Source: Lepidodermella squamata (lineage: Eukaryota; Animalia; Gastrotricha). Taken from it: 64,000 nt of DNA. The notes beneath the pieces are model-generated. The model saw only the letters and a program-made list of their open reading frames with translations. It was not told the origin of the DNA and did not search any database. The translations under genes and the position numbers were made by a program. The stretch is taken from NCBI GenBank assembly GCA_047495785.1, contig JBLDXI010000048.1:186001-250000 (forward strand), in the 5' to 3' direction. Shown one piece after another: positions 1 to 53,098 of this stretch (positions within the stretch are counted from its first letter, which is position 1; each line of letters opens with the position of its first letter).

Positions 1-989
1 GATGAAGTCCTCGTAAACATTGCTTCAATTTTCGCTTGATACAGACGAGATTTCAATCTATCTTTCTTGTCCTTAATCGCATCTAGCTCTTCGATATCGA
101 ATAACGAAGCTAATCTCTTCAAAACCAGCTCAGAAATACTGAAAATAACAAAATATGAACAAAATGAATGCATAATTTTAACGGAATTCTAACCAATTAA
201 AGTTCGCAGGTGAATTACTGACAACCGCTTCGGTATTCGTATGAATAAACGTAAGGCAATCAGTCACAAGTTCGTCCATTTGAAGAAAATCGGAAGAAAT
301 CAGAATTGAAATAACATTAGCTGGTTCCAAAACCGGCGGGCCCGAACTGTTAGTACCCTGAGAACTAGAGCCTGCCGGTAATTGAGATTCTGGTACGTCT
401 TTATGCACGTATTTCATCAACCAATCGAAAATAACAACGTCGCATTGAACACTGATGTCAACATCGTCTGGTTTCGAATCGTCCGTTAGATGAGCGGCGA
501 AGAACTTCATTTTAGAAACTAGCAACCATTTAGCGCAATAGAAATCCTGACTGCGGCGTTTCGCCTCGTCAACCACGTGTATTCGCAATAATGCAGATGA
601 GTAATTATCATTGCTTTTAGCCGCAGCATCAGGCGGCGAACCTTGAGCCATAGCGGGTTTGTCGCCTTCGTTTAAATACTCAGAAATTTGAACATCTGAC
701 TGACTAGCATCATTTGAATTAAGACTAGCGTCGAGCGTAAGTGGTGCATAGAAAGACCCGGCTCGGTCTAACGGAAATACTTTGTCGCAAAAGTCCTGCA
801 AAATAGATAATCGATAATGTTGAATGAAACGGGCAACGGTATATATCGGCTTACTTGATATGTACGCTTCGATAGGAATGGTAATTCCCGACACAATGCA
901 TCGAAATCACTTGGAGCTGGCCTCACACCACTACTACGTAGTTGGCTAAGCACATAAAAAGTGGCGGCTGACGACGCCGGATCGTTCAT
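1..989 (-). CDS. SANBR: SANT and BTB domain regulator of class switch recombination (KIAA1841/DUF3342) homolog, 3' end outside the window
   Basis: Exons 989-855, 795-194 and 138-<1, with GT-AG introns in consistent phase. Family motifs IHVVDEAKRRSQDFYC, DISVQCDVVIFDWLMKYV, NVISILISSDFLQMDELV, CISELVLKRLASLF..IKDKKDRLKSRLY. Confidence 0.9.
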
Positions 990-1980
990 TCGTACTCTGT
1001 TGATTGCTCACTCATAAATAATTAATTTTACGATACGGCCATGTTTGAGTTAGATCCAAGAGTTTATCTATCAATATCGTTAGGAACTAGTGAATGGAAA
1101 CAAAATAAATCACTGGAAAAATGCAAAAAAAGAAAATCAAGAGCCTACGAGAAGAAATATGATGGAACTTCGATTACTTGTGACCCAAGTAAACGGTTGT
1201 CGAGGGCTACAATTAATTCAAAGCCACATGCGAGCGCAAGTGACTAAACGATGACAAAGTAAACTTATGCAATTGCAAGAATCTAATTTGAGGGAAAATT
1301 TCTCGAGCGACACAGCTTTCCAAAATGCACCCCGAGTTGCCGAAAAGAGGATTGTTTCAGAAAAGCATTGCGAACTATTACCGGTTTCTCACAGCACCTA
1401 GTATCATCGAGACAGCAAAAGAACTCTCATTAGATAGCATTGAAGTAGCGCTGGAACAGTGCAAGTGTTCATTCTCGAGATCAAAGGGAATTCGCAAACG
1501 ATTTACTCGGATAACCAGACAAATGACGTCCGAAAACCGCAACACGCGTTACCTGAGCGCAATCAGAAAACTGAAATCAGCCTGTACCGTGTCCACGGAC
1601 GCGCGGGTTGCTCAATTCTTTTTCAACGGAAATAAAACACAATTTCCTTATATTGTTATTCGCAATTTTTAATGTTTTTTCCATAATTTAGTTTTTGTTG
1701 CCCCCTTGGCGACATGATTTTTTGCCCTTGAATGAGTCATCGCTGTAATCAATCAGCTGCTATCAGTTGTTTTGCGTGCAAAAGTACAACACAAAGAAAC
1801 ATAAGCAACTATTGCAATGTCTAGAGGCACTTAATCACCATTAATTCATGATAATATATGTTTGCTGATGCTCCCACAATGAATATTTATTGCGTCTACA
1901 TCAGTGAGGCCATCTGACCACCCTTGTTGTTTCAACACCTTTCGCCAACTCATCGTGTTAAATTCATTCACTCATAATCA

Positions 1981-3544
1981 ATGTCATCGAGAAGACCTTG
2001 CTCCCTATTCGAAATCCCCACTGCATCGCTTAAAGTAAGTGGAATGTCAGTTGAAGACTTCGCAGGTGTTCTGCGGAATGGTCGATCTTCTGGTTGTTTG
2101 GGCGATCATCTACACAACGATTATGTGATATTCGATTGCCGAAAGTATGAAAGATTTGCGGCGCATCATATATTCAGCGCACAATCTTTTGACAAAATGA
2201 TGGCGCTATATAACAATAACCTCGTTCAATTGGTCCAACATGTTACTGCTTCGTCGGCGGGTGGTAGCTATTTTCCCAATCAATCACTTAGCGTAACGAA
2301 AGGCAAGAAGAAGTTCATCATCTACGACGAAAATTCAACTGCTCTCAAGGAATGTGTGCCATATGTAGTGCCATTTGTAGAAGAGCTACAGGCGCATAAC
2401 AACGACGTATTTTTGTTAATAGGTTTGTACTCTTACCCTGGGCTTTTCAATTGTTTAACATCTGTGTTTTTAGGTGGCTTCTCGGCCTTCTCTTCTCAGT
2501 ATCCAGCGTTGTGTGTAAGCGAGGTTGTTTGTCTTCGGCCTGCGAATTTGTTCGCCGCCGAGCTACATGACTCTAACTCATTACCCGTGCAAAGCCCCGC
2601 TAAGGGAAGTGCAAATCTTGCGCGGAGGTTACTTTCACCGGATAAAACGTCGAGTTTGATACCACGAGCTTCAAGCATGTTAGTCATGTCCCCGGAGCAA
2701 AGTGGTCCTGATTTTTGCACCTTTCTTCCAAGCGAGATTTTGTCTCATGTTTTTATTGGTTTGTTCAGTTCAGTTTCAGGTTTTCGTTTATTTATTTTGC
2801 TATAATTTATTTTAGGATCCGAGTTCGATGCGAAGGATTTACGATTTTTGACCCAACATAACATCACTCATGTGCTTAATGTGACAACGCATATACCGTG
2901 TTTTTATGAAAATCGTCTCTCATACAAGCGTCTCCCAGCATGCGATACTGATAGCGATAACATAAGACAATACTTTGACGAGGCCTCGGATTTCATAGGT
3001 GCGTTTTTTGTTTTCAAATTTTCCGTTTCTCTTATCTTATCTCGCTAGCTTATTCATCGATGATATTAACCGGGTTAATTTTTATACCACAGATTCTGCC
3101 GAGAGAGCAGGGGGCAAGGTTCTTGTGCATTGTCAAGCTGGCATATCGCGTTCGCCATCCATTGTTTTGGCCTACTTAATAGGCCGTAAAAACATGGCGT
3201 TTTCTGACGCATATCAACTGCTGGCAAAACTGCGGCCGATAATCGCGCCCAACTTCAATTTCCTCGCGCAGCTGAACGAATTCGAATCGGAATGCGCGTC
3301 ATCGCGGCGGTCGAGCAACGGCCACGATGAAGTCGGATCGTCATCTTCCGTCAGTTTAAGCGGCTCGTCAGATTTCGACGATGACCCGTGCGATCCGTGC
3401 AATAACTCATCGGGGCGGGCTGGTTCGGCAAATAAAGTTATGATGCTAGTGCCGCTGCCGCCGAAACGATGCCGAACAGGGGGCTCGAACGACGGAACAA
3501 CTGTTCATCACCACCACCACAACGCAGAGTCGTGTTTTTTATAG
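1981..3544 (+). CDS. DUSP10: Dual-specificity MAP kinase phosphatase (rhodanese + DSP domains), DUSP10/puckered-like
   Basis: Exons 1981-2422, 2474-2758, 2816-2998, 3093-3544. Rhodanese motif DCRKYERFAAHHI; DSP motifs THVLNVTTHIP and YKRLPACD, catalytic VHCQAGISRS, and IAPNFNFLAQL. Subfamily assignment is less certain than the family. Confidence 0.88.
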
Positions 3545-4562
3545 CTTTTTGCGACTGATTTTGCTCATTATTTAAATTTGCGAAATTTTTGGGTTTACAA
3601 AAATGCCTGAAATTTGGCAACTAGAAAATAATAATATTTCTTTGTTTTATGATTATTATTCATATCTGTTAAATTGATTAATCGATTATTAATTTATTTA
3701 AGAGAAGTCAATAAGTAATTATCACCGGTTCATTTTTTGTTCTCGCGCTGTTTTTTTGTTGATTTATCCTTCGAAAAATTATGATCATCCATTTATTTCT
3801 TCTTGCAACTCTTACTTCGCGTCTCCAATATAACTTACAAAAAATGTGAATTGAAATGAGAAAAAACAACATGATACCGTGCTTTCCTCTCTCTCTCTCT
3901 TCTTGGTTTTGATGATCGGGAAACAATCGTTTTTTTCAGGAGGCCAATTGAACCAACCGTGCGTGCGATGGTCCAATGTGAAAATTAACCACGACCTGCG
4001 TTTACCTTGATCATAATTGTTGGCTACTTTTTTGACAAACGCGCAATGAGAAGGTTGAAAAAATCAATAAAATACCATTTTTTCATGAAAAACACCAATA
4101 GGCGTCGTTCTCGTAAATTTTATTCTTCATCTCAGTAAAAACAAGGAAGCGGTTCGTTCGTATAGTAAGCCGAAATTTCTCGTTGCAACAGTTGAATAGA
4201 AAAAAAAACAATGCGGCGATCGACCCGCCGCGCACAGGTGACGTGAGTATGAATCGATGAATAAATTATGACTCGAAATTGTAGACCGTGATTCACGACG
4301 CACCCTCAAGAAAAACACTAAACAACGTGCGCATGATGCTTCAGTGCGAGCGATTCAAAACTGCGAGAAATCGTAGAAAAAACGCCGACGTTTGTTTATA
4401 TACACTGAATACCTGTCAATTGCATAAATATCACAAATATTCAAGATAGGTAGAAGTAATGACGTAAAACCGTAGAAAAGGCGAGAAAATGGCGGAAATC
4501 ATTAAATAATAGTAAAAATCGATTAAAATTGATACTCATTTCAATCCAATTTCTTTTCAATA

Positions 4563-7500
4563 TCAACTGCGGTCGTAGTGGCGCAAATTTTCGCCCGTAA
4601 TATTCGCGCCACCGGAAGATTCGAAATGCTGATTGTAGCTATTGTTATTATTATTATTATTGAAAGAGGCGGTGTGGTTCGCAGCAGCATCAGCAGCGCA
4701 CAAATCTGAGCAGGAGGGGTAGCGGCCACGCATCGATGACCGGCCCGGCTGCGGTTTGATTTTCGACATAATTTTGTCAGATTCTGACAGGTCGACCTTC
4801 AAATCGCCGAGAATTTGCTGCGATCGCAGGATCAAATCGAACAGCTTGCCGCGTTCGAATTGCGATTGCTGCAATAAGTACAACAAAATTGGAATATAAA
4901 ACAGGTTTATTCACCGATGAGAATTCAAATCCCAATTAATCCGCGGACTTGCATATCCCACGGCGTAGTAAATTATTTGATTAGAATCGTGGGCCGTGAA
5001 AAACGAAAGAAAAATCAATCAAAATGAGGCGTGGCTTAGAGGATTGAAACTGCCAAATATAGTAAATCAGAGAAATTACCTCGAAAAATGAAATTAAAAA
5101 TTCCTCGTGACAAAAGATCTTTCAGAATCCCACGCGTATTAACTTTAAATTTTCATTTCCACAAAATTTGAAATTTTACTCCCTAAAATTTTTAGTTCCA
5201 CTTTTTCATTCATATTTTAATTTAGCTATTCAGGTATCGATGTTCACTCATCGTAAAAATACGCATGTGATCAGTGTAGGAATTTAAATTGGTGAAATTT
5301 TGAGATCATTCCATAGTGATGAGTCATAACCGCACGTTAGCGTGGGACTTGGCTAATATTGAAGAAAAACTGTCACATATCAACGCCTGGCAACAGACTA
5401 CACACACTCATACATATACACACTTAGTACATACAACAAAAATCTCTCATGCGTGGGTAAAGTAGCAATAATAATAAATTAGTAATAATAATAACAAAGT
5501 AAGTAGAACAAGCGAAGCCCATTTTTACTTGAATTTTGTTGTTGTCAAAAACATACCGTTGACAAATCATGCGCGTTCAAATCACCGTCAACGACATTTG
5601 ACATTGAGTACGTTCGCCTCGTTGCGTAATAGCCCGGGGCGAGGCCGTGGACCGGGCTTTGACTTCCAGCATTTTCGCCCGGCTCGCCGCCCATTGTGAA
5701 CCGGCGATGAGGGCTTTTCGAGCGCGACCGGTGCCGCGTTGCCGAGTAGGACGATGGCGCTTGCTGTTGTTGGGGGTTCTAAACACGGGTTGGATCAAAT
5801 AATGCAAAATACATGCATCAAACGTTTGGGATCAAGCACGATATTAAAATACCAATCAATCACCCTAATTATTTTGCATATAATCGATGAAACAAAGTCA
5901 CGGTGAATTTCATTGAAAAAAGGCTCCATATTTAAATAAAATTCGAGACAGCCGCAATTGATAGATCTAATTTTCCCACGCGAAATCACGACTGAAATGG
6001 CCAATTAACGCCGTACAAATTTTCCCACGGTTGACTTAATTAATGACTCATGAAAAGCCAAATATTTTAACTTTCATCGAAATTTGAGAAATTATTAATT
6101 TTGAAATTATACGGTTATTGCCAAATTTTCAACCATTTAATTTTTGATGATGATTGAATTTTTTTTTAAATATTTGTTTCATCGATATCAAGCGTCAAGC
6201 AAAGGTTAGAGTACCAATTTTTCACATCGAAACAATACGATTTAATCACCATGCCAAAACTATCACGGATTTATCAAATGAAATTTTCGTTATTACTAAC
6301 CTGGACGCATCGATAGGCCGCATTGAGCAGGTCTTCGTCGCGAATTCTCGCCGGCGCCGGACTGGCGGGCGGTGCGCCGTGAAAGGACGCCGATCTCGCC
6401 CCTAAATTACTCGTGAACGTAGCCAACGGGTACCGGTCCAGCAGCGTACACAGCCTTTCGAGGTTTCGGCTTATCCAGGCAATTTTGTCGGCCAGGAAAC
6501 GCGCCATAGCCGCTGAATCTTGCACTTTGTTCAAATTCAACGGCGTCGGGGGACTGTCGACAGCCTTTACAAAAAATTAAACATCAGATCTAAATATTTC
6601 AGTATTTTCAGATTTTTCGATTTTTTAATTCGATGAAAATCTCGATTTTTTTCAATTTTCGCTTTCAAATCGAATTGTTCAAACTTTCTCACAGTGAAAT
6701 TTTGTTTTCAATTCAGCGTCGAAAAACAGCGCAATTTTGTGGCCTTGCAATCCATGAAAAAAGGAAATTAATCTTATTAGCATTTTTTGAATGAAAAAAA
6801 ATCAATTATTTATCACCCGCATATCCTGAGTCACGAGAAATTGAAACTCACGGTGAATATTTTTGAATTAATTTTGCGTCATTCTATCCTTCCGCGTTTT
6901 CGCATGCCTGGTTCACTTTACTGCGGCTGTTATTAGCCTTTGAGTATTATACAGACGAGCGGTATAATGTCTAACGAGCGGTAAGCGGATATCCCCCAGT
7001 GGGCGCCTACTACACAGTGCTAATCTCTTATTTTCCGCTCTTGAATTTACCATCGATTTTTCGTTCACTTTTCGTCATCATCATAGCGGCCGCGTTTCTT
7101 ATTGATATAGGATACGAGAACGTCACTGGCCTTGAAATTTCGAGGCATATATCAAAAATTTATACTGGCTAATAATTTCCGGACAAATTCAATTTTTATC
7201 GGCTATTCAGTGATAAGAAATAAAGAATAATAATGTCTAGGGTACTTAATTTACCCTTGTGACAGATGAGAGAATCGATATGAAATTTTGAATTAATTTA
7301 GCCCGCAAGTACACGTGAACAAAATTTTTGTCCTCTTGAGTACCAAGATTTGAAGGTCAAAAACTACAACTACACCGATAAAAACACTTAATCCTAGCGA
7401 AAAACGTGAGGAAAAACGATGAATCACACTTGTGAAATTGTCATTACGCTTGGCTGTTGTGTTTCCGCGGTGAATTTGCGCGAAATATATTTCTCCATAT

Positions 7501-22184: not shown

Positions 22185-22256
22185 AGCAGAGTGGCGCAGT
22201 GGAAGCGCGCTGGGCCCATAACCCAGAGGTCTGTAGATCGAAACTACGCTCTGCTA
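22185..22256 (+). tRNA. Initiator tRNA-Met (CAT)
   Basis: AGCAGAGTGGCGCAGTGGAAGCGCGCTGGGCCCATAACCCAGAGGTCTGTAGATCGAAACTACGCTCTGCTA. A1-U72 pair, GGG/CCC anticodon stem, GATCGAAA T-loop, and a T6 Pol III terminator at 22265-22270. Confidence 0.97.
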
Positions 22257-22381: not shown

Positions 22382-22540
22382 AAACTTACCTGGCACTTGG
22401 ATGCGCCTCGATCATGAAGGGGGCCGCCCCAGGGCGAGGCGGGCCATTGCACTGCGGTCCGCTGACCCCTGCGCTCTGCCTCATCGGCGGAGTCGGGTGC
22501 AAAATATTTCACGTGGGTACCGGCGTTCGCGCCACACCCG
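22382..22540 (+). ncRNA. U1: U1 spliceosomal snRNA (variant Sm site)
   Basis: 5' AAACTTACCTGG; U1-70K loop GATCATGAAG; CCCCAGGGCGAGGC; U1A loop ATTGCACT; GCTGACCCCTGCG; SL4 GGGT..GGCGTTCGCGCC..ACCC. Confidence 0.93.
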
Positions 22541-23090
22541 TAAAATCAATACAAAAAATTGGCTTTGACCAGGAAATAGCCTAGGATCCTGTTCGATTAA
22601 ACGGACAATAGGTCAGCAGCGATATTCAGCAGCTTTTCATCATCGACCACATGAGCCCCCACGTTTCCTTTCAATTTCTTGATTACTGAACTCAAGATTT
22701 TCAACAATTCCGTTATTATGCCCTCGAGTTTTTTTGCTACTCCTTATTTCATAATCATAATTTGTTTGATTTGCACTAGAAAAAATCAAGTAAACAAGGC
22801 TTTGAGGCGTTACCAAGCGATCATCTTCATCTAATTGATAGCCGCCAAATTTTGGGTCATTAAAAAAGTCAAGAAGGCGCGTGCGGGAAATGGCGACTCT
22901 GGAAATACCAAAAGCCCTAACGCGTGCCATTGATAAGCCATTGAAACGGCGGTGCAAAACAAGCCCATTCGGCTGAAAGGGCTATTTAATGGTCTATTGA
23001 GCTTTGGATGACTTTTATGGGGACTCACTCTGCCACTTGCACTTGTATCCGTGAAGCTTTCTTCGGCAAACGAAATTGAAGCCGAAAAAA

Positions 23091-41153: not shown

Positions 41154-42137
41154 AATCTTGAGCGGATAGCTAAAAATGTTTTTGGTAACCTTGAAATTTG
41201 TCGCTGCCTTCTTATAGCCTTCCGATTTTTTGATTAGCCAGATCGATTCAGGCCGCAACAAATTTATCATGTGAACGAACTTGAAGCAACCGACGTTAAT
41301 ATTAGGTATCTTTCAAATCATCGTAAACACGATTTACTCATATTCGCTTACTCGGGCACAGCCCGGATAATGGAAATCTTCCACCTTCAATACTGGACAC
41401 CTTTCAGCACTAACTTGTAAAATTAGCATTTATTAAAGTAAAACGGTGCCTTGATTCCTATTCGCTGTATTTGATCATCGCACCAATTGCCGCATTGCTA
41501 TTATGATTAAGCGCTCCATTTCTAAAAGGCCGTATATCAAAGCGATGATTTGTCTTTTAGCATGTCAAGTCTATAGTTTTGAGTTTTTCCGCTAATTAAC
41601 TCGCCAATATTTCCGTCATGTTCTAGGAAGTCCAAGTTAATAATAACGGTGAAGCTTCATATACACAATGTCGCCTAAACCACACCTCTCTTTCATCGAA
41701 GCTTTTTCCCACACTCAGCACGTTCGAATTTTCGATGACTGCCCGCGCATTTGTGTCTAAGTAGTCCTTAATTCTCCTGCTCAGCCCGACAATCTGTTAG
41801 CAAATGGAAGCATTTCTCAAGATCCTGTCAACATGTTTTGCTCATCACAGTTACTTGGGTGACCCTGTTTCCCGGTTCATCGTAGCAGACGTCGGGGGAT
41901 TCTAATTATAAGAGTATTCAGATATGCGGGGATGTCAGCGATCTGCGTACCCAAGTACTCACTTTGCGATAACATCCGACGTGCATTTCAGCAGCAAATG
42001 CAAAGGAGCCGAACACCTCTCAAAACGCACTTTGGATTAACAGGAAATATCAGTTTATTGAAAGAAACAAAGAATTCTTAAGATAAGCAATAGTTTGTCA
42101 GAAATATGCGATTGGTCCGTAGTTCTTATTGTCGAGA

Positions 42138-45100
42138 TCACGAGAATAAGCTTTTTCGATTCGCTTTCTTCGCAACAGCTACAGGTTTGTTCGACGTAGG
42201 CTCTACCACCACAGCTTTCACGCTCGGCATCATAGCGTCAATGCGCATAGGCTTCTTCGACATGAGCCCTGTCGGCGTAGCATCCGGCGCGTTTTCGGGG
42301 GCCTGTGACAACCGGAAAGGTCGGCGAATGACAGTGGGCGGAGCTTCGGGGTGCGGAATGGCTGCGTCCAGCGGCGTTGCGTGGACCGGCGATTTCTCTG
42401 GCGATTTGTCGAAAGAATGCTCGGTTATCGTTGAGTTGGCACCCGTATCACTGCTCGTCAACGTATCGTCGCTGCTAGGCTCTTCGTCAGCAGCTTCATC
42501 AGATCCTGCAAAAGGAGATTCAGAGGAATGCATGTGTCTTATTGGGAAATCGTACGATGGTACCAAATTTCATTTAATTCAATACCTAACCAGTTATTTC
42601 GGTTTTTAAGTGGTTTGGGTTGGGTTAGGGTTAGGTTGGGATTAGGTTAAGATTAAGATTATAGGCGGGGACTTAAAATTGGGGATTTGGAACCGATTGG
42701 AATAATTTGGTACTGAATGAAGTAATTTTGTAAGGAATTCACTATATCCCTGTCCCATTCAATACTTAGACGGCTTTTGACTAAGGATTATATTATGATT
42801 CCGCATCCCTTCCCCTTAGAAATACAAAAATGTACCCGAAAAAACCTAATGGTATAACGGTGTCGGTAAATCTCGATGTTTCCGGAATTTCAACGGTATT
42901 TTCATTGCGGCAATCAAGGGAACCCATGTTCCAATGTAAAATCCTCAAAAGGCCTCACCTGGTGCGTTATCTGGACCCACGGCAGCTCCCTCGTCACGCC
43001 CGACTTCATCCGAATCAGTGAATCGGTACCACGAAACATCCTGATCTTCATAACCCTCCGGAACCATGCAAATCTCATCGATATCTTCCTCGGCAAGATC
43101 TTCCAATCGGGCGATATCTTCAACCTCGTCACGCTCGACTGAATCTTGCCGCGCCTCTTCATCCAACGCAGCCTGCCACTGGGTGACTCCAGCAGGTGAC
43201 GGGTAGATGAACTGGGCGCATTTGCACGACGAGCAGCGAGGCGAATTAGTGAGCCGAACGAGACGGGCGCGATAGCCCGAGGCAGCCGCGCATCGTTTGC
43301 CGCAGAAGAACTCGTTGCGGTCGGCTTGACCCAGACCGCCCTTGCGATTCGTGACGGTCATCGTAGCTGATCGGCCGCAGTTGGAGCACGGGATTTCGGG
43401 GAGTAGCGACTCGGCCAGGATCCCACCGGTGCAATTGTCTCGGGGTGGCCTGATTAAGCGACACATCTGCAATTCGATGCGAGTCACGTCGTTGTCTTCG
43501 CCGAAAACGAGGCGAAGTGTGCGGCGCTCGAATAGCTCGCCCAGGTGAGTGTACAAAGGCTCGCGCATCGAGAAAGCAGGTCCAATGCAAACCTGAACAA
43601 AAAATGTCAAAGTTTAGGACGCTATTGGAAACTGAAAATGGGACCTAGTTCCGGACATTATTACGTTTACCAGCCAAATTTATGACATTGAATTTCAGAT
43701 TTGTATGAATTTCGAAAAATATGACCTCATTCTGGACAAATTTCAGAAATTTCACTCCATTTGTGAAAAAAATCGAAATTTCAGTTGAACTCATTTTGGA
43801 CATACTCGATTTTTGCCAACATCTTCCGCTTATTCTTTTAAGTCACCTCAACTCACTTTTTCGTGTGGCTGGGCGTAGAATACTGCGATGGGTCGATCGC
43901 CAGCTTTGCCTTGGCGACTGTCATTGTCAACGTAGATTGTCGCGACGTGGTCACAAGCGCGACACGGTGCGAACCATTTCGCCGCAACATGCGACGCCAT
44001 TTCGGCAAACGTCGAATTCTCTCGCGCCCAAACGTACAGCGACATGACGCTCTCAGCGCCCGTGGCCTTGAACAAAATGGCGCCTTGGGTGCAGCCGTCG
44101 TTGGGGTCAGGGTCAAGAGCGTGGTCGACGCCGAGATGCCGCGCCACACCGCAGTCACTAAGTAGTAATTTGCAGCAAAGGCAGCGCGTCACGGATCGTG
44201 AACTCAGCCACGCTCCGATGCGCCCGGCTGTTGAGCCACTTGTAGCTTCACTGACTGAAAAAGCCATAAAAAACAATCAAACTTATTGAAGAAATCGAAA
44301 AGTTAAAATATGCCTATTTATTAGGAATATAATTTGAATTTGAAATATTTGTCATCGAAGGAATTTCAAATTACATATTTCCGATTTCATGAAATTTAAC
44401 TGAATTAAAATATACATGAATAGCTTTCTCATTTTCGAATTTGTTTGAATTTCAAAAATTGAAAAATTAAAAATTAAAATTTACTAATTTTTCAAACTTT
44501 AGGAATTTTTGAAATTTTGAAAGTGTTTTCGGACTTCGCCAGTTTTCCAGTTTTAGAATCAATGCTTCAACCATAAATGACTAGCCTAAATCCTGATCGA
44601 TATCTCCAGTCGCATAGCTCAGCAATTCGGTCGGTCTGTAGCCAGGAATCCAGCCATCCATGCCTTTCTTGGTGGCCACCTTGCTCGCTGGCATGACTCG
44701 TTCGACCGCAGGTACCACGTCATCGAAACTTGCGTCCTGTTCATTCTGGTCACCGAGCGGCACTGCGGAATCGTCGCAAATCTCGGGGCGATTCTCAACT
44801 GCCGGGCCGAATCTAGCCGCTAGTTCGATGATGCCTGGCAGTTTTTCGAGGGCACTGATCATATCGCGGCGCGTTGATAGCGGCGATCGTTTCTTGACAC
44901 CGGCGTTCCGCTTGACTGGTTTTGATTGCTCTTGAGATTCGGGAATTACTACTTGTTCGTCGCTGGCGAGGGGCAAGCCGCGATCTCGGCACAAATTTTG
45001 AAGGTCGAAGTCATTGAGTCTGGCTAATTTTAGGCGTTTTATTAGCTGAAGCTGGAAAAATTGAAAATATTGATGAACGAATAATATTCAATATTCAATA

Positions 45101-45423
45101 AATTACAAGTAATTCCTAATTATAAGTCCGAAAATTTATTTGATTTAAGGAAAATTAAATTTGTCGAATTTCGAGATATCAAGAGCCTATAAAATTCAGC
45201 TTTAGCTGCGAAAAAAATCAAAATAAATCTGTAAAATATTGTTCTTGGAGGAAATTCGGAGAAGCTACATAATTGCTTTTTATTTAGTCACCTTGAGTCC
45301 GGAAGTTGACAGCTTTAGGGTTCGAAGTCGAGTTCTCAGCTCATCAACGGTCAACTGTTCCAGGTAAAGGACGCCATCGGCAGCTGTGGTATTCGAACCG
45401 TTACTATTTTTCACAGGCGGCAT
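42138..45423 (-). CDS. 665-aa SAP-domain protein fused to a Cys/His-rich domain resembling prokaryotic pRiA4b-ORF3/MM3350-like Zn-finger proteins
   Basis: Exons 45423-45292, 45051-44586, 44254-43857, 43592-42959, 42505-42138 total 1998 nt in frame (intron 2 has a GC donor). SAP motif LTVDELRTRLRTLKLSTSGLK|LQLIKRL; core CLCC..RHL, W..C..CDH, LAESLLPEIPCSNCGRSAT, LTNSPRCSSC. Confidence 0.75.
42559..42713. repeat. Small TIR-bounded intronic element containing degenerate TTAGGG-like repeats
   Basis: GGTACCAAATT ... AATTTGGTAC inverted ends flank GGGTTGGGTTAGGGTTAGGTTGGGATTAGGTTAAG. Confidence 0.6.
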
Positions 45424-46087
45424 AGATCAGCAGTTCTTCAAGGCTGGTGAGATCTATTTGACTAAGAAAAATGCAGAACCGCTTGGTTTTAGGCTTTGTA
45501 GCTAGTAAAAGCTAGAGTTCGCTTTTGCCAAGAAAATGACGCACGCGATTCATGCGACACGTGGCACAACAACTACATACCAAGTCTCAGCTAGAAATTA
45601 TTTCTAGAAATAAAATATGTTCAAATTATTTTAATATTTGTCGGATATTTTATACGATTTTATTAATACCCGAGTTCGTTGCACGAGATTTGCGCAATTG
45701 GAACGTAGCGCAGCTGAGTGGAGATGACCAAATCGAGCGCGGAGAATCCAGATATTAATGTATTACGATATCAATAAATATCGCATGAGCACAGCTACCA
45801 ACGCTATATTTTTCAAGCGGATGATATATATTTAGCTTATTATTTAATTCGTATAGCGGAATCAGATTTGCCTTTTGCGTGGCCAAAATTGACCGGAAGC
45901 TGAAACAAAATTAGAATAATTTATTCGCCCAAAAATGCCTTTGCAAACATTATTTCGAAATTTTTATAACTAATTGAACAAATAAATTATTATAAAATGT
46001 ATAAAAAGTATCACTGGAAAAACTGCTAGAAAAAATGATGACGCTTATATTAGGCCGATCATCAACTGATTCGGTACACATACGGTA

Positions 46088-46984
46088 CCGTCAGTTGGGG
46101 CTATCCGGACGGCGAAAAAAAATTACCCCCTGATTTTTTTGCATTTTTACACGTTTCAGAAGGTCCTGATTCCAATGGCACCAGGATTCCGAATAGCCCC
46201 ACGGATGGGGCTATTCGGACAGGTGTGGGGCTATTAATGATACAGTGGTCGAGTGGCTTTGGATGTGCTTCTAGAAAGCACAGCAAAGTACAAAACGAGG
46301 GTTCAAGTCCAGGCCACGAAACAATTTTTTTTCCAAACAGAAGTTGGAATTTTTTGCAATTATTCGAATGCATTTTTAGCTTAATTTTAATTTTTCAGTT
46401 TTTTTAATTAGCAGTAGTATTAGCGAATTTTGAATTCATGCCACGAGCACTAGCCATTCGGTTAACCCAATGAAAAGTTTTACAAACCTCTTAAATTTGA
46501 AGTATGCCTCAATTGCTGAGAAACTTATCAACTACAAAGCTCATTAGAATATTCCAATTCTGCCGCATTTCTCTGTTCCGATTGCCCCACAACCTCATTT
46601 TTTCGTGGGGCTAAAAGGACGCAATTAATTAGACAAAAGTATGAGTCGAATCGGGGCGGTTTAAATTTTCATGGGTTCCCCATCACCTGTAGGTTCAGAA
46701 AAAATTAATCGCAGGTCCAGCAAAATTCTCATCTGGTCCAGGTAATTCAACGCAGAACAGTGCTTAAACTGAGTTAAACTTACACCTGAAAGGTAAGCCC
46801 ATATCTTCACAACCACTTACTCTCAGGTCATGAAATTTTTATGGCATGTGGGTCGTCTTTCCCCCTAACTCCATGCAAAATTTCATTGCTAACGGTCGGG
46901 TAGTTTTGGAGCCATGCTCCTTCTCCCGTTTGCATGAACATTCGTCCGAGTAGCCCCAATGACCCAGATTACCCCAACTGACGG
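46088..46984. mobile_element. 897-bp non-autonomous DNA transposon (TA target-site duplication, pogo/Tc1 superfamily type)
   Basis: TA-CCGTCAGTTGGGGCTATCCGG ... CCAGATTACCCCAACTGACGG-TA. Internal GGGGCTA repeats, an internal tRNA-like segment, no transposase. Confidence 0.85.
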
Positions 46985-48264
46985 TACTTGATCGGTCAAT
47001 GTTCAATTTTGCCAAATTTCCAATTTATTCTGTGGTCATCTCTCCCTCAAAAGCGTACGCTTTGGCAATAGAATGTTCGAAGAAATTCCGGAAAACGCCC
47101 GGCGGTCAATTAAAATTGACACCTTAAAAATGATAACGAATGACGGTAAAAATTAAACGGCATATTACGGCTAGCTCAATGGTACCTTTGAAAAATAATG
47201 TACCTAGTATATTGAAAATATTCATATAACTGTCATTAGTAATATTACTTTATTTTTTCAAAAATTTTGGATACAGTTGGAATGTTGGAAAATAAATATA
47301 TAAAGTTGAGCACAATGCCGTTGATGCTGAGTTGAAAGCTAGAAAAATCAAACCTAACGTAAACGCTGTTATTTCGGACGAAAACATAGTTTTCAGATCT
47401 AGAAAAATCAGGAAAAAAATTAAACAAATATGGCAATTTCAGAGAATGAGGGGGGGGGGGGGGCCGTATTCGCATGTCTCTGCGAAATTTCATAATTTTC
47501 CCCATGTTACCTTGATTTTATAAAAATGGTGCAAGGTTTTGATGAATTTGGACACCTCATTAGCATATTCATAATTGTCGGGATGTGTGCAGAAATTTTA
47601 TTGAAATTCCGAAAAAATATGCGCACATGGTGCCAAGAAACTGATGACGTCATCCAAACTCGATTCAAATTTTTTTCCCGCAAATTTTAGCTTAATGCAT
47701 TCATTATGTCCAAAAATGCCCCACGTCGGCTTAATCTTTGAGCTCACCTGTAAAAAAATCCCAGCGCCAAATGTCCCATTTTTTTTTACAAGTCGACGCT
47801 TTGACGCCAAAGTTTTTATTTTTTATAAAAACAGGAAATTTTCAGAATACTTTTTATTTGGTACCGTTGGAAAGCGCGTCTTTTAAGGCACCTCGAGATT
47901 TTAATTGCAATTTTTTCAACCTCACTTATAGAAAACAATTACGCTTAGAAGTCGTTTTGCCCAATAAATTAACCACGCTTACGGTATGAACATGGCTAAT
48001 ATTTTTCGAGGTTATTCCGAGTGAAACATTGACCTGGACATCTGCTACCGCCAAATATCCTTGTTATCGAAATGTTGTTGTTTTTTTTGGCAAAAAAATG
48101 ACACGCGCCAGGAAACCGTAAGTAACTCGCGTGCGTGCAACACCTGGAAGAAAATTTCAAATTTCCCTCGATGCCCCTGTTTCAGAATTCAACTGAAATA
48201 ATCTTCAAGATTTTTTGTTTTTACTATTACTTTCTTTGCGAAATTTTAATATTTAGATTTCTAA

Positions 48265-51200
48265 ATGCAGCTTCCCGGTATTTTTATCGCTTTGGTAACG
48301 GCTGTCCTTATGGCGACGAGGACGGTTGTATGCGCGCTTCAAAGCAATGTAAAAAGAGATGCGGTTTTATAAAGTATCTTTTATCATAACTGCTATCTTT
48401 TAGGTTGAGTCTGAAGCAGCTCTAACGGTGAGAAACGAGTTTTATTTGCGCAATCTCGGTTCATCTCAGGTTGGGCACGTATAATTTAACGTTTTTTTTT
48501 CGCACGCCCATCGATTGAAATTGCACGCTAAATTGCGTCGTTAGAATTTACCGCGGCCAATATAAAGGCAAATTTGTCGCAACACAGAAACACCGTCCTT
48601 TGTCCTTTCAAATTTTCGCTTTAGGGCCAAGCTACCGGGTCGTATTATCGAAGAATTTTTATAAGGGTCTTACTTTAGTGGAACCAAGTTTTGGAATTTT
48701 TAATGGGCCTACAGCCTACAACCTTTTTTCGAAACTTTCAAGAATGTCAAGATTGATTAGCATAATTTTAAATAATCTATCATAAAATGCAGGGTAAAAT
48801 TCTGTATAAGACGCATTCTCTACTCTAGAATTCATACGTTGCCCTAATTTCGTTGAAATTTTCGACCTTTTGCTTAGCTAAAATTAGGTTCTGCAATGGC
48901 AAAATTTGGTCCCGCTAAAATATATTCTAGTTTTATAATACCAAGCCAAAAACACAGTTTTGGTTTAAACAAAACCAAGGATTGGGTACCAGAATTACGG
49001 GGAAAATTCGATAGTTATAGATAAGAACGTTATGCCAGTGGAATTTCCAAATCAATTCAAAGATATTTTAAGGTGCGGACAAAATTGCCCATTTGAATAA
49101 CCCACTTAATTTTATTTTACCTAGCATCAGGTCATTTAAAATAAGCCGCGCCTCCTGGGCATTTCCTAACTTGTTGTCGCCCTCATTTTCATTTGAAAAA
49201 CCTCATTGTGATTTTACCTGGGTGAGGAGATAATACAAAGGATGAGGCTGATATCGATTTAAGCTCCGATTTTTCTACCTTTAAATTGAAAATAGCACAA
49301 GAGCCGATTGGAAAATATGAATAACGTAAACTTTCTCCTTGCAGCCAGGTGCCAGTCTGTTCAAGTCGCCGCGAGACGGCGAAGATGCGATGCCGGTGCT
49401 GAGCGATGCTCTCAACGAATCACTATGGTCAAACCCCGTGCCATTCATGATTTTCCCCCAGCCGCCGTTGAGTAAGTCTAGACGAGGAAGCTATAGGGGT
49501 AACCCTGGAGGAAAACATGCCCTTGAAAGTCATAGTTAGCTCTTGCTCGAAAACATGTCAAATTAGGTGAAACGGTGGCCAAGTTGCTTCTGATATTCTC
49601 GAGGTAGATGGCCCTGTTGAAGCTCACAGTCGGAATTGGTCCTTCGATGCTAACGTCCTGCTTGTTTTGTGTATATATCTAACAGCTAGTGATTTGGAGG
49701 CGAGTTGGCGAGCCAATTTGCGACTTGTCGAGGAGAACACGTGCATTCGATTCAAAGAGATCTTGTTTTCAGACTACTTCAATCCAGATGGAACAGAAAA
49801 CGGTAGGCCACTACCTGCAGATCGATGGTTCCGCGTTGTTAACGGGTGCGTCAATTGAAATAATTATTTCTATAGTTCGCCATTTTACCTCAAGAAAACC
49901 ATATATACTTACCTATCGCAATTAGTCGAGAATTTTCTACATTAGTACCTCGTCGTCATATGCTTTATACCTTCATCTCAAACTCAGGTTTTCTTTGACT
50001 ACTAAAACTGTGTGAAAAATAAATTGTGATGCTATAATATGTACTTATAACCCTATATAACCCTATATAACCCTATATTCTTCCTTTATAGTGAATACAG
50101 CGCCGAGTCTGGTTACCATTCAGCTTTCACAACACAAAATGCTCAATTCGATGCGGCACCAGTAAGTTATATGGGAATATACCAATTTGAGATTTCATCC
50201 ACGATAGAGGTAGTTGTAAGTGTGCTACTGCTTCCGATCAACTGGCTGATCGGCTTTATTTATATTATTCATGAAAATGATATTCCTAGGTTTCGCAATA
50301 ATTTGTTGTCTCTTTCTTTGCAGCTTGCCGCCAAAGCTTTACTGATAACGCTCGGATCTGTAAGTAATTGAAATTTCTTTCCAGAATGCTCAAAGAATAC
50401 TTTCTTTATGTGGTTCAGAAGCAGGAACACTTTTCTTGCTTTAGATTTAGTTTATCAGGGGGACTGGCGGCTTGTTGGTACGATTTTTACGATTTTAGCA
50501 CTATAGGACTCGAGTTCAAGTTCATGAAATAATTTTCATGAATTGCCAAAAATTGCGCTCAGGAGGCTTGAAAATGAATCTTCACCACTGATTTGAATCT
50601 GCGTTATTTGCAGAATTACGACTTTAATCGCTATGACCGTGACGATTACCTGACAGTAACAGGTGGAAACAGGTTGGAATCGCAATAATCTTTCGTCAAT
50701 TCGTCAATATATTTTCTCGTTTTTTATTAGTTACTTTCCTGCCAACTTTGTCAAGTTCTTGCGAGAGGACTCGGAAACGTTCGACATTCCTTTCGATTAT
50801 GGATCAGCTTCTATACCTCACCCGAGCATCCTAGCCAAACCCAGCCGGTATACCATCTTACCGAAAGACTTGCGTTACATTGGAGCCATGAACTCGGGAT
50901 CGATGTCGTTTAACAATCTCAAGTACCTGAACTACCGATATAACTGCTTAGGTGAGTTGAAGCGATGTAATCCAACTTGAATGATCCTGACTTTTCTAGA
51001 GACAAACTGTTCCAACTCGTCGTCGGTCAACTGTACGAATGGGGGCTACCAGAACCCGAACAATTGCTCGCAATGCCTGTGCCCACCTGGGACCGGCGGG
51101 CGGCTCTGCGCAGACTTGCCTCCCTTCTTGCCTAAAGAAACTTGCGGCGGGGTTATTCGCATGACTCAGTGCAACTTGATGTACATTGACTCGCCTAATT

Positions 51201-53098
51201 ATCCGAATGCTTATCCAAATGGGAGCATTTGCTCATGGCGCGTGATCTCCTCTACGGTACGGCTCTTGAAACTATCTCGATAGTCGTTAATTGAAACTTG
51301 ATTCCATTCCTAAACAACAGCCTGGCCTAACTTTCGGATTTGACGGAAAACCAGATATAACTTCTGGAAATTCTGGTAAGATTTGGTTAGCTTGCTGCTT
51401 AGACGTTGAACGATCTGAAAGGTCAACCAGGAAAATGCCTTGCTAATGTCCTGTAGTTAGTAGTTAGTGCACGGAGGAAGATCCTCAATTATAGGAGGCA
51501 TTTTCAGGCTCAAATTTTATGACCAAATGGTCCTGGCAAATGACAAAATGGTCTTTTCGGGTTTTTATCATGGTCATGAGAACTGAGAACTGGAGGCGGT
51601 TTCGATACCACCTTCGCAAACTGGTAGTAGGGTTTTTCACGTTACCGTTTCTTGCTTCTTCCTTACATCAGGTAATCAACATCATTAAAAAGTGAACTTT
51701 GTCCACAGGCGGATGGCAGTTTCAGTCTCAAGACGACTACTGCGAAGACTACGTCGAATTCCTAAACGCGGGCGACGGAACTCAGCCATACTTACGCATT
51801 TGCTCCTATGGCGTGAGCAGCGGTCGGATCTACGAAGTCAACGGTACAACCGCTGTCATTCACTTCAAATCGAACGCAGCAACGCCCGGCAAAGGATTCC
51901 GCCTTTATGTTTACGCCAAATGCCCCGGAGTCGACGATCGAGAGGTGAGCCTCACGCCGTCCGGGTACGATTACGAGGGGTCGAAGAATACATCTGTGAC
52001 TGGGAAATCCTGCCTGCCATGGCCGGAAGCAACTGAATTCTACGATGGTCTCGCGTATCCCAGAGGCTCAATTCTAGCCTCGAGCAATTACTGTCGCAAT
52101 CCGACGTCGAACGCTAATGGGACATACTGTTACGTCAGTGCGAACACAACTGAGCCTTGCTCAATCCCGAGAGCTGTAAATTCTGGGACAACTACAAGTT
52201 AGCATTAATTGCTTTATCGTAGGTATTGTCGGGCTCATAATTCTCTATTTTCTCAGGCAATACGACTACTCCAGCTGCTCAATTGCTTAGCCGTTGCGTC
52301 AACTCGAAGACCAACGAATTCGAAGCTTGTCGTTCGACTTGCTCTGCCGGAGAAACTACGCTAAAGCGTAACGGTGTACTGGACTCGACTACTTGCCAAC
52401 AGGGGGTGAATTGGTTTGATAAAAATTGGGGAAATGTAAAAAGGGCCCAAACTAGCTTACTAACACTAAATTTGGCTTATTTTATTTTGCAAAGTCGAAC
52501 TTTTGCTTTTCTGATTGATACAAATGTCCCTAGGGCCGCCGGGGTGATTTTTCCGCGAGTTGTCCTGATTAATCTCATTTTCTTATACATATTTATTTGC
52601 TTAATATATCTTTGCAGAACGCCAAAAAGTGTTACAATAGCTTGACCAATGTCTATAGTTGTACCCCGGGTAACACTGGGTGTGGCAGTAATGCTACGAC
52701 CGTCGTGAGTTGATGGTTTCCAGTGACCAGTGAAGTACCGTTATTTCATTATCCATTTCAGCCTCCGATGTTTAATGGCTACAAAAGTTTCGCTCGCAAC
52801 TGGTTGGCTTGCAATCACGTTTATGGCTATGTAATGTTTCAAAATATCACAATTGTGAAACACTAATAATGTGAAATTTCGCCATCAGAAATACAATCGT
52901 TGCTACCGAAACGTCACGTCTCCTTCTTCAGGCGATTTCGTCGATTGTCGCCGAACTGTATATGGCTGCCGGAATGGTGTCGAAGTTTGTTGCCATACAT
53001 TTTGTAACTTACTCGCTTATAATTTAATCAATTTGTTCCAGAAACGAAGGATTGACGAAGGCGAATATTTGGACCCTTTCTCGTGTTACAAATTCTAA
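48265..53098 (+). CDS. Secreted astacin-like (catalytically degenerate)-EGF-CUB-Kringle-Cys-rich protein
   Basis: Multi-exon: 48265-48327, 48404-48469, 49345-49471, 49686-49845, 50092-50209, 50324-50359, 50614-50672, 50731-50951, ~51000-51256, ~51672-52194 and further short exons to 53098. Motifs LWSNPVPF, EENTCIRF, RYDRDDY, PFDYGS, CTNGGYQNPNNCSQCLCP, SPNYPNAYP, NYCRNP. 3' exon boundaries are approximate. Confidence 0.85.

Follow-up and report, generated by a model that had tools for sequence, protein, structure and literature searches.

How does a zinc-binding module of prokaryotic type come to lie inside an intron-bearing animal gene that begins with a SAP domain? The question is raised by a gene on the minus strand (45423-42138) of a 64,000-nucleotide (nt) stretch of DNA from the gastrotrich Lepidodermella squamata, referred to here as the window, from whose first position all gene coordinates are numbered. 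An earlier note on this stretch had joined five exons into a SAP domain, a second short helical motif, a series of Cys-rich motifs and an acidic tail, had likened the Cys-rich part to an uncharacterised bacterial and archaeal family, and had proposed a horizontally acquired, domesticated gene. The five exons do join in frame, giving a coding sequence of 1,998 nt and a protein of 665 amino acids, and all the motifs quoted were found in their places. Taken jointly with the history and mode of action proposed below, residues 220-455 of this protein are probably a full-length, strongly diverged homolog of a zinc-rich prokaryotic family whose members are ~225 amino acids long.

The family described in the note proved to be real. 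Its motif VVNSPRxGVC, back-translated to a degenerate 30-nt pattern and scanned over a prokaryotic genome collection, was found at no fewer than 120 loci, against a chance expectation that we estimate at ~35 (35 bits of pattern over 1.2e12 positions). The motif lies at the end of open reading frames (ORFs), mostly of 210-270 amino acids, that share full-length similarity; among the loci listed are 113 bacterial and 6 archaeal records, drawn from 19 or more phyla. Members are stand-alone proteins in which an N-terminal C2HC finger, CxxC-x11-H-x3-C, is followed, in order, by TL..LD.FLR.IWLECCGHLS.F, YDFGSTT.L.LKV, LLARN.PP..C..CG.PAT, two further CxxC pairs plus H.C, and LPVVNSPR.GVC.Y.G. Pfam PF07929 (PRiA4_ORF3) covers their middle part, with scores among the tested members of 13.6 to 34.9 bits and two of the five (34.9 and 30.8 bits) above the cut-off of 26.6. 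A profile search yielded at least 3,988 prokaryotic clusters, nearly all annotated as PF07929 and named either 'hypothetical' or 'plasmid pRiA4b ORF-3 family protein'. Judged by motif loci and PF07929 matches, the note's account of the family was accurate, and the family is a zinc-rich subfamily of PF07929/pRiA4b ORF-3/MM3350-like proteins, in which the finger, an MM3350-like core bearing CC-G-H and a Cys-rich C-terminal module succeed one another.

Kinship of the animal module with this family was assessed through a hidden Markov model (HMM) of 232 nodes built solely from 84 complete prokaryotic ORFs, with E-values at Z=1 and 1,000 shuffles of the window protein and of its metagenomic ortholog (described below) as control. 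The window protein scored 33.6 bits (E 1.4e-12) over HMM positions 8-214 of 232, the matching residues 220-455 spanning the exon 3/4 junction, and the ortholog scored 19.6 bits (E 2.6e-8; HMM 11-214, residues 170-403). The best shuffle of the 1,000 reached 4.3 bits. Alignment of the two eukaryotic sequences to the prokaryotic alignment by hhalign gave a probability of 98.4% and an E-value of 5.9e-15 over 204 columns, so that the suspected relationship is borne out by significant profile matches. As a further control, 1,248 stop-to-stop pieces from a six-frame translation of the window were scored: only two ORFs matched, those of exon 4 (21.6 bits, E 7.9e-6) and exon 3 (14.3 bits, E 1.3e-3). 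Since these two match separately, the homology result is independent of the splice join. Against a library of billions of sequences, 33.6 bits corresponds to an E-value of ~0.01, which is why ordinary searches started from either side fail to make the connection.

Every motif has its partner in the alignment, and the order is the same throughout. The fingers come first, followed by AILFKATG..SLYVWAR with lhlkvegk..ywlhlev, TFAEMASHVAAKWFAPCRACDH with tlkklDefLrdiWleCCgH, VFGEDNDVTRIELQM with YDfGstTeLklkv, ILAESLLPEIPCSNCGRSAT with llarNeppeikCeeCgkpAt, FFCGKRC with llCeeC and, at the end, LTNSPRCSSC with pVVNSPRvGVC. Written as common patterns, the likeness comprises a CxxC-x11/12-H finger, a beta-strand segment, T[LF]..[LM]......W...C..C.H., a [YF]-G/D...T.[LI] strand, L[LA]..(x3)P.[IV].C..CG..AT, F.C...C and NSPR...C. 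The animal protein differs in having C-x2-C-x-H where the family has CC-G-H and, as the fourth ligand of its finger, a His shifted by one position. It also adds introns, an N-terminal SAP domain and an acidic tail of 205 amino acids to what in prokaryotes is a solitary gene.

Could the resemblance instead be one of convergence or chance among Cys-rich motifs, the region being a set of lineage-specific eukaryotic fingers such as C2H2 plus FCS/MYM-like? Much of the score does come from Cys/His columns, yet the collinearity over 204-207 positions takes in non-ligand motifs as well: TF..M...V..KW is aligned with TL..LD.FLR.IW, LAESLLPEIPCSNCGRSAT with LLARNePPeikCeeCGkpAT, and NSPR with its counterpart. 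Pfam PF07929 did not match the animal exon peptides; set against this are the 33.6 bits obtained where 1,000 composition-matched shuffles gave at most 4.3, the hhalign result, and the ortholog, which matches independently. The arrangement CxxC...FCxxxC recalls FCS/MYM fingers, and Atlas, a language-model search, offered a weak lead to zf-FCS (0.76); neither zf-FCS nor any other finger model matches in Pfam, however, and the animal spacing of C-x2-C-x24-C-x3-C departs from that of the FCS/MYM finger (PF06467; CxxC-x19-22-FCSxxC). We regard convergence as very improbable.

The homologous module is distributed over two exons of the following gene model.

45292-45423, minus strand: exon 1, amino acids 1-44, with the start codon and the opening two thirds of SAP.
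45052-45291, minus strand: intron 1, 240 nt, GT-AG, phase 0, within the SAP domain; position and phase common to the metagenomic ortholog.
44586-45051, minus strand: exon 2, amino acids 45-200, with the end of the SAP domain, a basic stretch resembling a nuclear localisation signal, and the conserved helical motif LSTRRDMISALEKLPGI (44821-44883).
44255-44585, minus strand: intron 2, 331 nt, GC-AG; lacking in the ortholog.
43857-44254, minus strand: exon 3, amino acids 200-332, in which a C2H2-type finger (44121-44183) is joined by the MM3350/PF07929-like core in its N-terminal half, W-x3-C-x2-C-x-H among its motifs.
43593-43856, minus strand: intron 3, 264 nt, GT-AG, phase 0, splitting the prokaryote-type module; position and phase common to the ortholog.
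42959-43592, minus strand: exon 4, amino acids 333-544, with the C-terminal half of the core, a zinc module rich in Cys (43218-43424; motifs CxxCG..AT, FFCGxRC and NSPRCxxCxC) and the first part of the acidic tail.
42506-42958, minus strand: intron 4, 453 nt, GT-AG, containing a high-copy repeat; lacking in the ortholog.
42138-42505, minus strand: coding part of exon 5, amino acids 544-665 and the stop codon, with a low-complexity tail rich in Pro, Ser and acidic residues and a basic C-terminus.
43224-44195, minus strand: the whole prokaryote-type module, amino acids 220-455, intron 3 included, collinear with HMM positions 8-214 of 232.
42054-42137, minus strand: 3' untranslated region, with an AATAAA signal at 42054-42059, ~80 nt past the stop codon; contigs of run X1 (see below) extend to 42094.

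An in-frame TGA lies two codons 5' of the ATG, and the GC content of the exons (50-58%) is distinct from that of the introns (24-38%). Junctions were examined in contigs from a public run presumed to be RNA (X1). These contigs are confined to exons, introns 1-3 having no depth at all and intron 4 almost none. Two contigs skip the 264 nt of intron 3 (joint 43590/43855), and a joint at 44254/44586 skips the 331 nt of intron 2, whose ends on the coding (minus) strand are GC..AG. At intron 1 a loose end at 45292 reads AGCTGAAG, matching the final 8 letters of exon 2, and at intron 4 a loose end at 42509 corresponds to the exon 4 terminus of an allele that differs slightly. All four junctions, that of the GC-AG intron among them, are thus represented in intron-free contigs, and the splicing of exons 1 and 2 to exon 3, on which the earlier note had staked its model, is borne out. 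Since joined contigs without introns are what a transcriptome would be expected to look like, X1 supports splicing and transcription even with its RNA nature presumed. The earlier model needs one small correction, the end of exon 3 being at 43857 (phase 0). The second short helical motif of the earlier note, LNDFDLQNLCRDRGLP, is present in the window protein but is not conserved in the ortholog; it is the downstream motif LSTRRDMISALEKLPGI that is conserved. Among the 19 exon variants listed for X1 and a further run, X2 (a subset of sites), 14 are synonymous and 5 non-synonymous, a ratio that fits purifying selection on the gene.

From the eukaryotic side the gene is remarkably short of relatives. 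Searches of the five exon peptides against Pfam gave SAP as the sole match, while NCBIfam and the PADLOC defence-system models gave none; a PDB sequence search and, within their length limits, word-index protein searches, each with exons 3 and 4, came back empty. By phmmer, the first 150 amino acids of exon 4 found one true match among 1.84 billion representative proteins, P0001 (295 amino acids, 44% identity, E 6e-30). Three additional matches were discarded as repeat-protein artefacts. That collection consists of annotated proteins, with unannotated eukaryotic genomes outside it, and the window's own protein gave no self-match there. P0001 and two near-identical members of its cluster come from ENA metagenome scaffolds (L001-L003), and these carry eukaryotic genes, among them a sphingolipid desaturase, a GDP-mannose dehydratase and an ANF_receptor gene. 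The three scaffolds had been gene-called as if prokaryotic, so that each exon is listed as an ORF of its own. Adjoining the ortholog on L002, at 644-4787, are three tandem CTP_transf_like (PF01467) genes.

When the gene model was compared with L001 by tblastn, a complete ortholog emerged at 29-44% identity, with the SAP domain, the Cys/His region and the acidic tail; the motif LST[KR]RDM..ALEK.PGI is conserved between the two. Its introns, of ~53 and ~62 nt, occupy the exact positions and phases of window intron 1 (inside SAP, ...GRK|) and intron 3 (H-x-K|). As the second of these lies inside the module in both eukaryotes, the gene already carrying that intron must predate their split. A search of JGI metagenomes, GTDB genomes and IMG/VR with the eukaryotic alignment revealed no further relatives. 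A comparison of the window with the ortholog contigs revealed no microsynteny; each has ANF_receptor genes nearby, but these are unrelated. Atlas had also likened exon 3 to unnamed phage proteins and Terminase_3C (0.93-0.94), a lead that was dropped, the corresponding piece of the ortholog having matched small C2H2-like clusters.

Where did the module come from? The broad, vertically inherited metazoan orthology that would speak against acquisition was not found: a single metagenomic eukaryotic cluster stands out from the 1.84 billion representatives searched with exon 4, whereas the prokaryotic clusters number at least 3,988 and the phyla 19 or more. This distribution, together with the setting of a full-length prokaryote-type unit between eukaryotic parts, leads us to infer a transfer from prokaryotes. 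A prokaryotic gene would have entered the ancestor of L. squamata and of at least one other eukaryote; spliceosomal introns would then have been gained, one of them inside the acquired module, and a SAP motif would have been joined to the N-terminus and a long tail, acidic and disordered, to the C-terminus. With its shared intron, the acquisition would be old and domesticated rather than recent.

In a tree with 84 prokaryotic rows, the two eukaryotes form one clade (Shimodaira-Hasegawa-like approximate likelihood ratio test, 100) on a stem of ~8.5 changes per site. Such an extremely long stem, coming without a donor clade, would also suit a module that was ancestral in eukaryotes, or acquired very early, and afterwards lost almost everywhere, with no lineage-restricted transfer; so would the two intron positions common to distant orthologs, and eukaryotic genomes that remain unannotated fall outside the protein libraries, in which even the window protein lacks a self-match. 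This scenario has to accommodate the solitary eukaryotic cluster beside the thousands of prokaryotic ones spread over so many phyla, and the JGI metagenomes, which gave nothing with eukaryote-type patterns. We consider it rather improbable. The earlier proposal of a horizontally acquired, domesticated gene stands as regards homology, introns and SAP fusion; the direction and timing of the transfer are its conjectural part, the stem of the tree being saturated.

The surroundings of the gene bear on a different alternative, that it is cargo of a transposable element, a contaminant or an assembly artefact. On the downstream side, at 35.9-41.3 kb, the minus strand carries exons of a class C G protein-coupled receptor (ANF_receptor, 7tm_3), and upstream, at 50663-52202 on the plus strand, Astacin, CUB and Kringle exons stand in a row. 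In run X2 the exons and introns are evenly covered at a depth of ~62-107, compared with ~68 in the flanks, which shows that the locus is not a multi-copy element. No second copy of the gene was found within the window, nor any direct or inverted repeats bracketing it, terminal inverted repeats included; the copy-number and repeat checks suggested by the earlier note thus turned out in favour of a host gene. Some Mutator-like transposons of prokaryotes do carry PF07929-like ORFs as passengers (PMC3942029), and a transposon of this kind is a conceivable vehicle for the transfer. Intron 4, too, contains a high-copy repeat. Animal-type genes on either side, a U1 small nuclear RNA gene in the window, depth at flank level, the lack of bracketing repeats and of a second copy in the window nevertheless make transposon cargo or contamination unlikely, and spliceosomal introns and spliced contigs argue in addition against a contaminant or artefact, so that we find this whole class of explanation scarcely credible. 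Linkage to host genes, spliceosomal introns and spliced transcripts are all present at the locus, and the gene is a single-locus, transcribed animal gene.

Some further features of the region may be recorded here. The intron 4 repeat (42484-42725) has a word depth in X2 of 2,500-5,400, compared with ~68 in the flanks, and includes degenerate telomere-like runs of GGTTAGG/GGTTGGG at ~42600-42660; other contigs join at the repeat with differing letters. For 42512-42794, X2 holds an identical copy and a second copy ~93-98% alike, in which 72 other letters stand in place of 281 nt of intron 4; this second copy could be an allele or a homeolog. Just upstream of the gene is a 24-nt inverted repeat pair (46085-46108 and 46964-46987; 88% complementary, 855 nt apart) that may be a small insertion resembling a miniature inverted-repeat transposable element. 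Elsewhere in the window, Rfam identifies a tRNA gene (22185-22256, plus strand) and a full-length U1 small nuclear RNA gene (22382-22541, plus strand; 101 bits), 130 nt apart.

What the captured module might do is best approached through the residues that it has kept. Conservation extends to 85% or more of the prokaryotic ORFs in 44 columns, and the window protein keeps 19 of them: in the finger C, C, H and L; W293, C297, C300 and H302; D365 and T369; C401, C404 and A408; C429; N448-S-P-R451; and C455. The N-terminal finger, CxxC-x11/12-H-x3-C/H, is represented by C224, C227, H239 and H244, conserved in the ortholog, with the fourth ligand one position off. Within the core motif LD.FLR.IWLECCGHLS.F the Trp, both Cys and the His (W293, C297, C300, H302) are kept, with a two-residue insertion between the Cys, and other residues stand at D, R, E, S and F. 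The YDFGSTT strand motif was not recovered as such: the window protein retains D365 and T369 only, the ortholog Y-D, and the invariant G is absent. In the C-terminal module C401, C404, G, A408, T, C429 (plus C433), N-S-P-R and C455 are kept, and the second CxxC pair is gone (V412, R415).

Replaced positions in the window protein are D286, R290, E295, S304 and N394. Both eukaryotes show changes at D/R/E of LD.FLR.IWLE, S/F of HLS.F, G of YDFG and N of ARN, as well as at VV and G-V around NSPR and at the terminal Y.G; both also have new Cys residues at positions 376, 452 and 457. The metal scaffold is preserved, whereas the polar invariants of the family are not.

The flanking parts of the protein are of a different character. 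The SAP domain claimed by the earlier note is recognised by Pfam (PF02037) at the N-terminus in exon 1 alone, with 24.5 bits against a gathering cut-off of 23.9 over model positions 2-25 of 37; the remaining part (LQLIKRLK) continues in exon 2, and exon 1 of the ortholog scores 22.7 bits. After it comes the basic stretch KPVKRNAGVKKRS, resembling a nuclear localisation signal (44884-44925). The C-terminal tail of 205 residues, in which D, E, S, T and P abound, has a net charge of -24 and contains a conserved hydrophobic patch, IDEI..(V/T)PE. The protein may be nuclear and may bind nucleic acid, as the earlier note had supposed.

The architecture suggests how the parts might work together. Tethering to DNA or chromatin would fall to the SAP domain; the zinc module, with nearly all of its ligands kept and its polar invariants mostly lost, would bind nucleic acid or protein instead of exerting the ancestral activity; and the acidic tail would contact basic partners such as histones. 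For a binding module on chromatin we put the chance a little below even. The alternative that the module keeps the prokaryotic family's own activity, as an enzyme or ligand sensor that SAP merely delivers to chromatin, would be in keeping with purifying selection and with the conservation of all main zinc sites, W293 and NSPR across two distant eukaryotes; it sits poorly with the replacement, in both of them, of polar residues that the prokaryotic family keeps invariant (D, R, E, S, N and the tail G-V) and with the disappearance of one CxxC pair. It is possible, if unlikely.

The prokaryotic family itself offers few functional hints. No recurrent gene neighbours of its members were found, the PADLOC models did not match it, and its profile had no match among IMG/VR viruses. 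Long fused prokaryotic ORFs were looked at (SEC-C, DUF6930 and an aminotransferase, probably a read-through) and gave no hint of function. The literature yielded no functional account of PF07929, which is mentioned only as a passenger ORF. A profile of the N-terminal finger finds, at E 9e-4, the ubiquitin-binding UBZ finger of human RAD18 and, more weakly, the fingers of WRNIP1 and Sgf11; a UBZ-like finger is a curious thing in organisms without ubiquitin. The family profile reached an E-value of 0.35 at best against a solved relative, PDB 2I1S.

The combined reading, in which an invertebrate lineage captured a prokaryotic PF07929-type zinc protein whole and turned it into a chromatin factor tethered by SAP, its binding role being new and not ancestral, is offered as a tentative one. 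Several points weigh against the homology, history and mode of action proposed here. The link to the family was made with a purpose-built profile and with hhalign, the family having been picked after the motifs had been seen; even when corrected for a choice among 25,000 families, the E-value stays near 4e-8. Pfam PF07929 did not match the window exon peptides or the ortholog ORFs at E-values up to 1, the sequences submitted being halves of a core that intron 3 splits, and the phmmer search from the eukaryotic side reached no prokaryote. AlphaFold2 models of exons 4 and 3, made separately from alignments of 2-3 rows, have a mean predicted local distance difference test score of 32 and 41, respectively. 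One CxxC pair is lost, with most of the invariants of YDFGSTT and of VV..GV..Y.G. The stem leading to the two eukaryotes is saturated, which renders their placement unreliable and leaves no donor clade to be named. The identification of X1 as RNA is a guess. Finally, the mechanism proposed above is inferred from the architecture of the protein.

In overall design the window protein recalls RAD18 (RING-UBZ4-SAP) and the PIAS proteins (SAP-PINIT-SP-RING-SIM-acidic tail), with which it has in common an N-terminal SAP domain, Cys/His zinc modules and an acidic tail with a hydrophobic patch. Unlike them, it has no RING, zf-MIZ or PINIT match in Pfam and its domain order differs; its finger, moreover, is spaced H-x4-H where RAD18 UBZ4 has H-x3-C. 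The resemblance is one of design only and not of membership. Horizontally acquired genes bearing introns are known in bdelloid rotifers, nematodes and other small invertebrates, and the present gene resembles them in its prokaryote-type coding module set among animal genes, in its gain of introns and in its expression. It differs from them in that the acquired part is too diverged for a donor to be traced and belongs to a function-orphan family, and in its fusion to a chromatin-tethering SAP domain, those genes being kept as metabolic enzymes. Domestication of acquired genes in animals is known; what would be new, to go by the sequences, is an acquired and domesticated prokaryotic gene from a function-orphan family fused to SAP.

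The finding means that transferred genes can diverge beyond the reach of Pfam and of single-sequence searches of billions of proteins and yet be recovered by a targeted profile, and surveys of foreign genes in animals may therefore overlook strongly diverged acquisitions. The intron inside the acquired module, common to two distant species, provides a clear example of intron gain after transfer. For the prokaryotes, a large function-orphan family is now tied to a eukaryotic chromatin context of SAP domain, zinc fingers and acidic tail, a context that hints, in a testable manner, at nucleic-acid or protein binding by the family. If the module was indeed captured and rebuilt as a chromatin factor, the gene would be the first experimentally tractable eukaryotic entry to a family of about 4,000 clusters.

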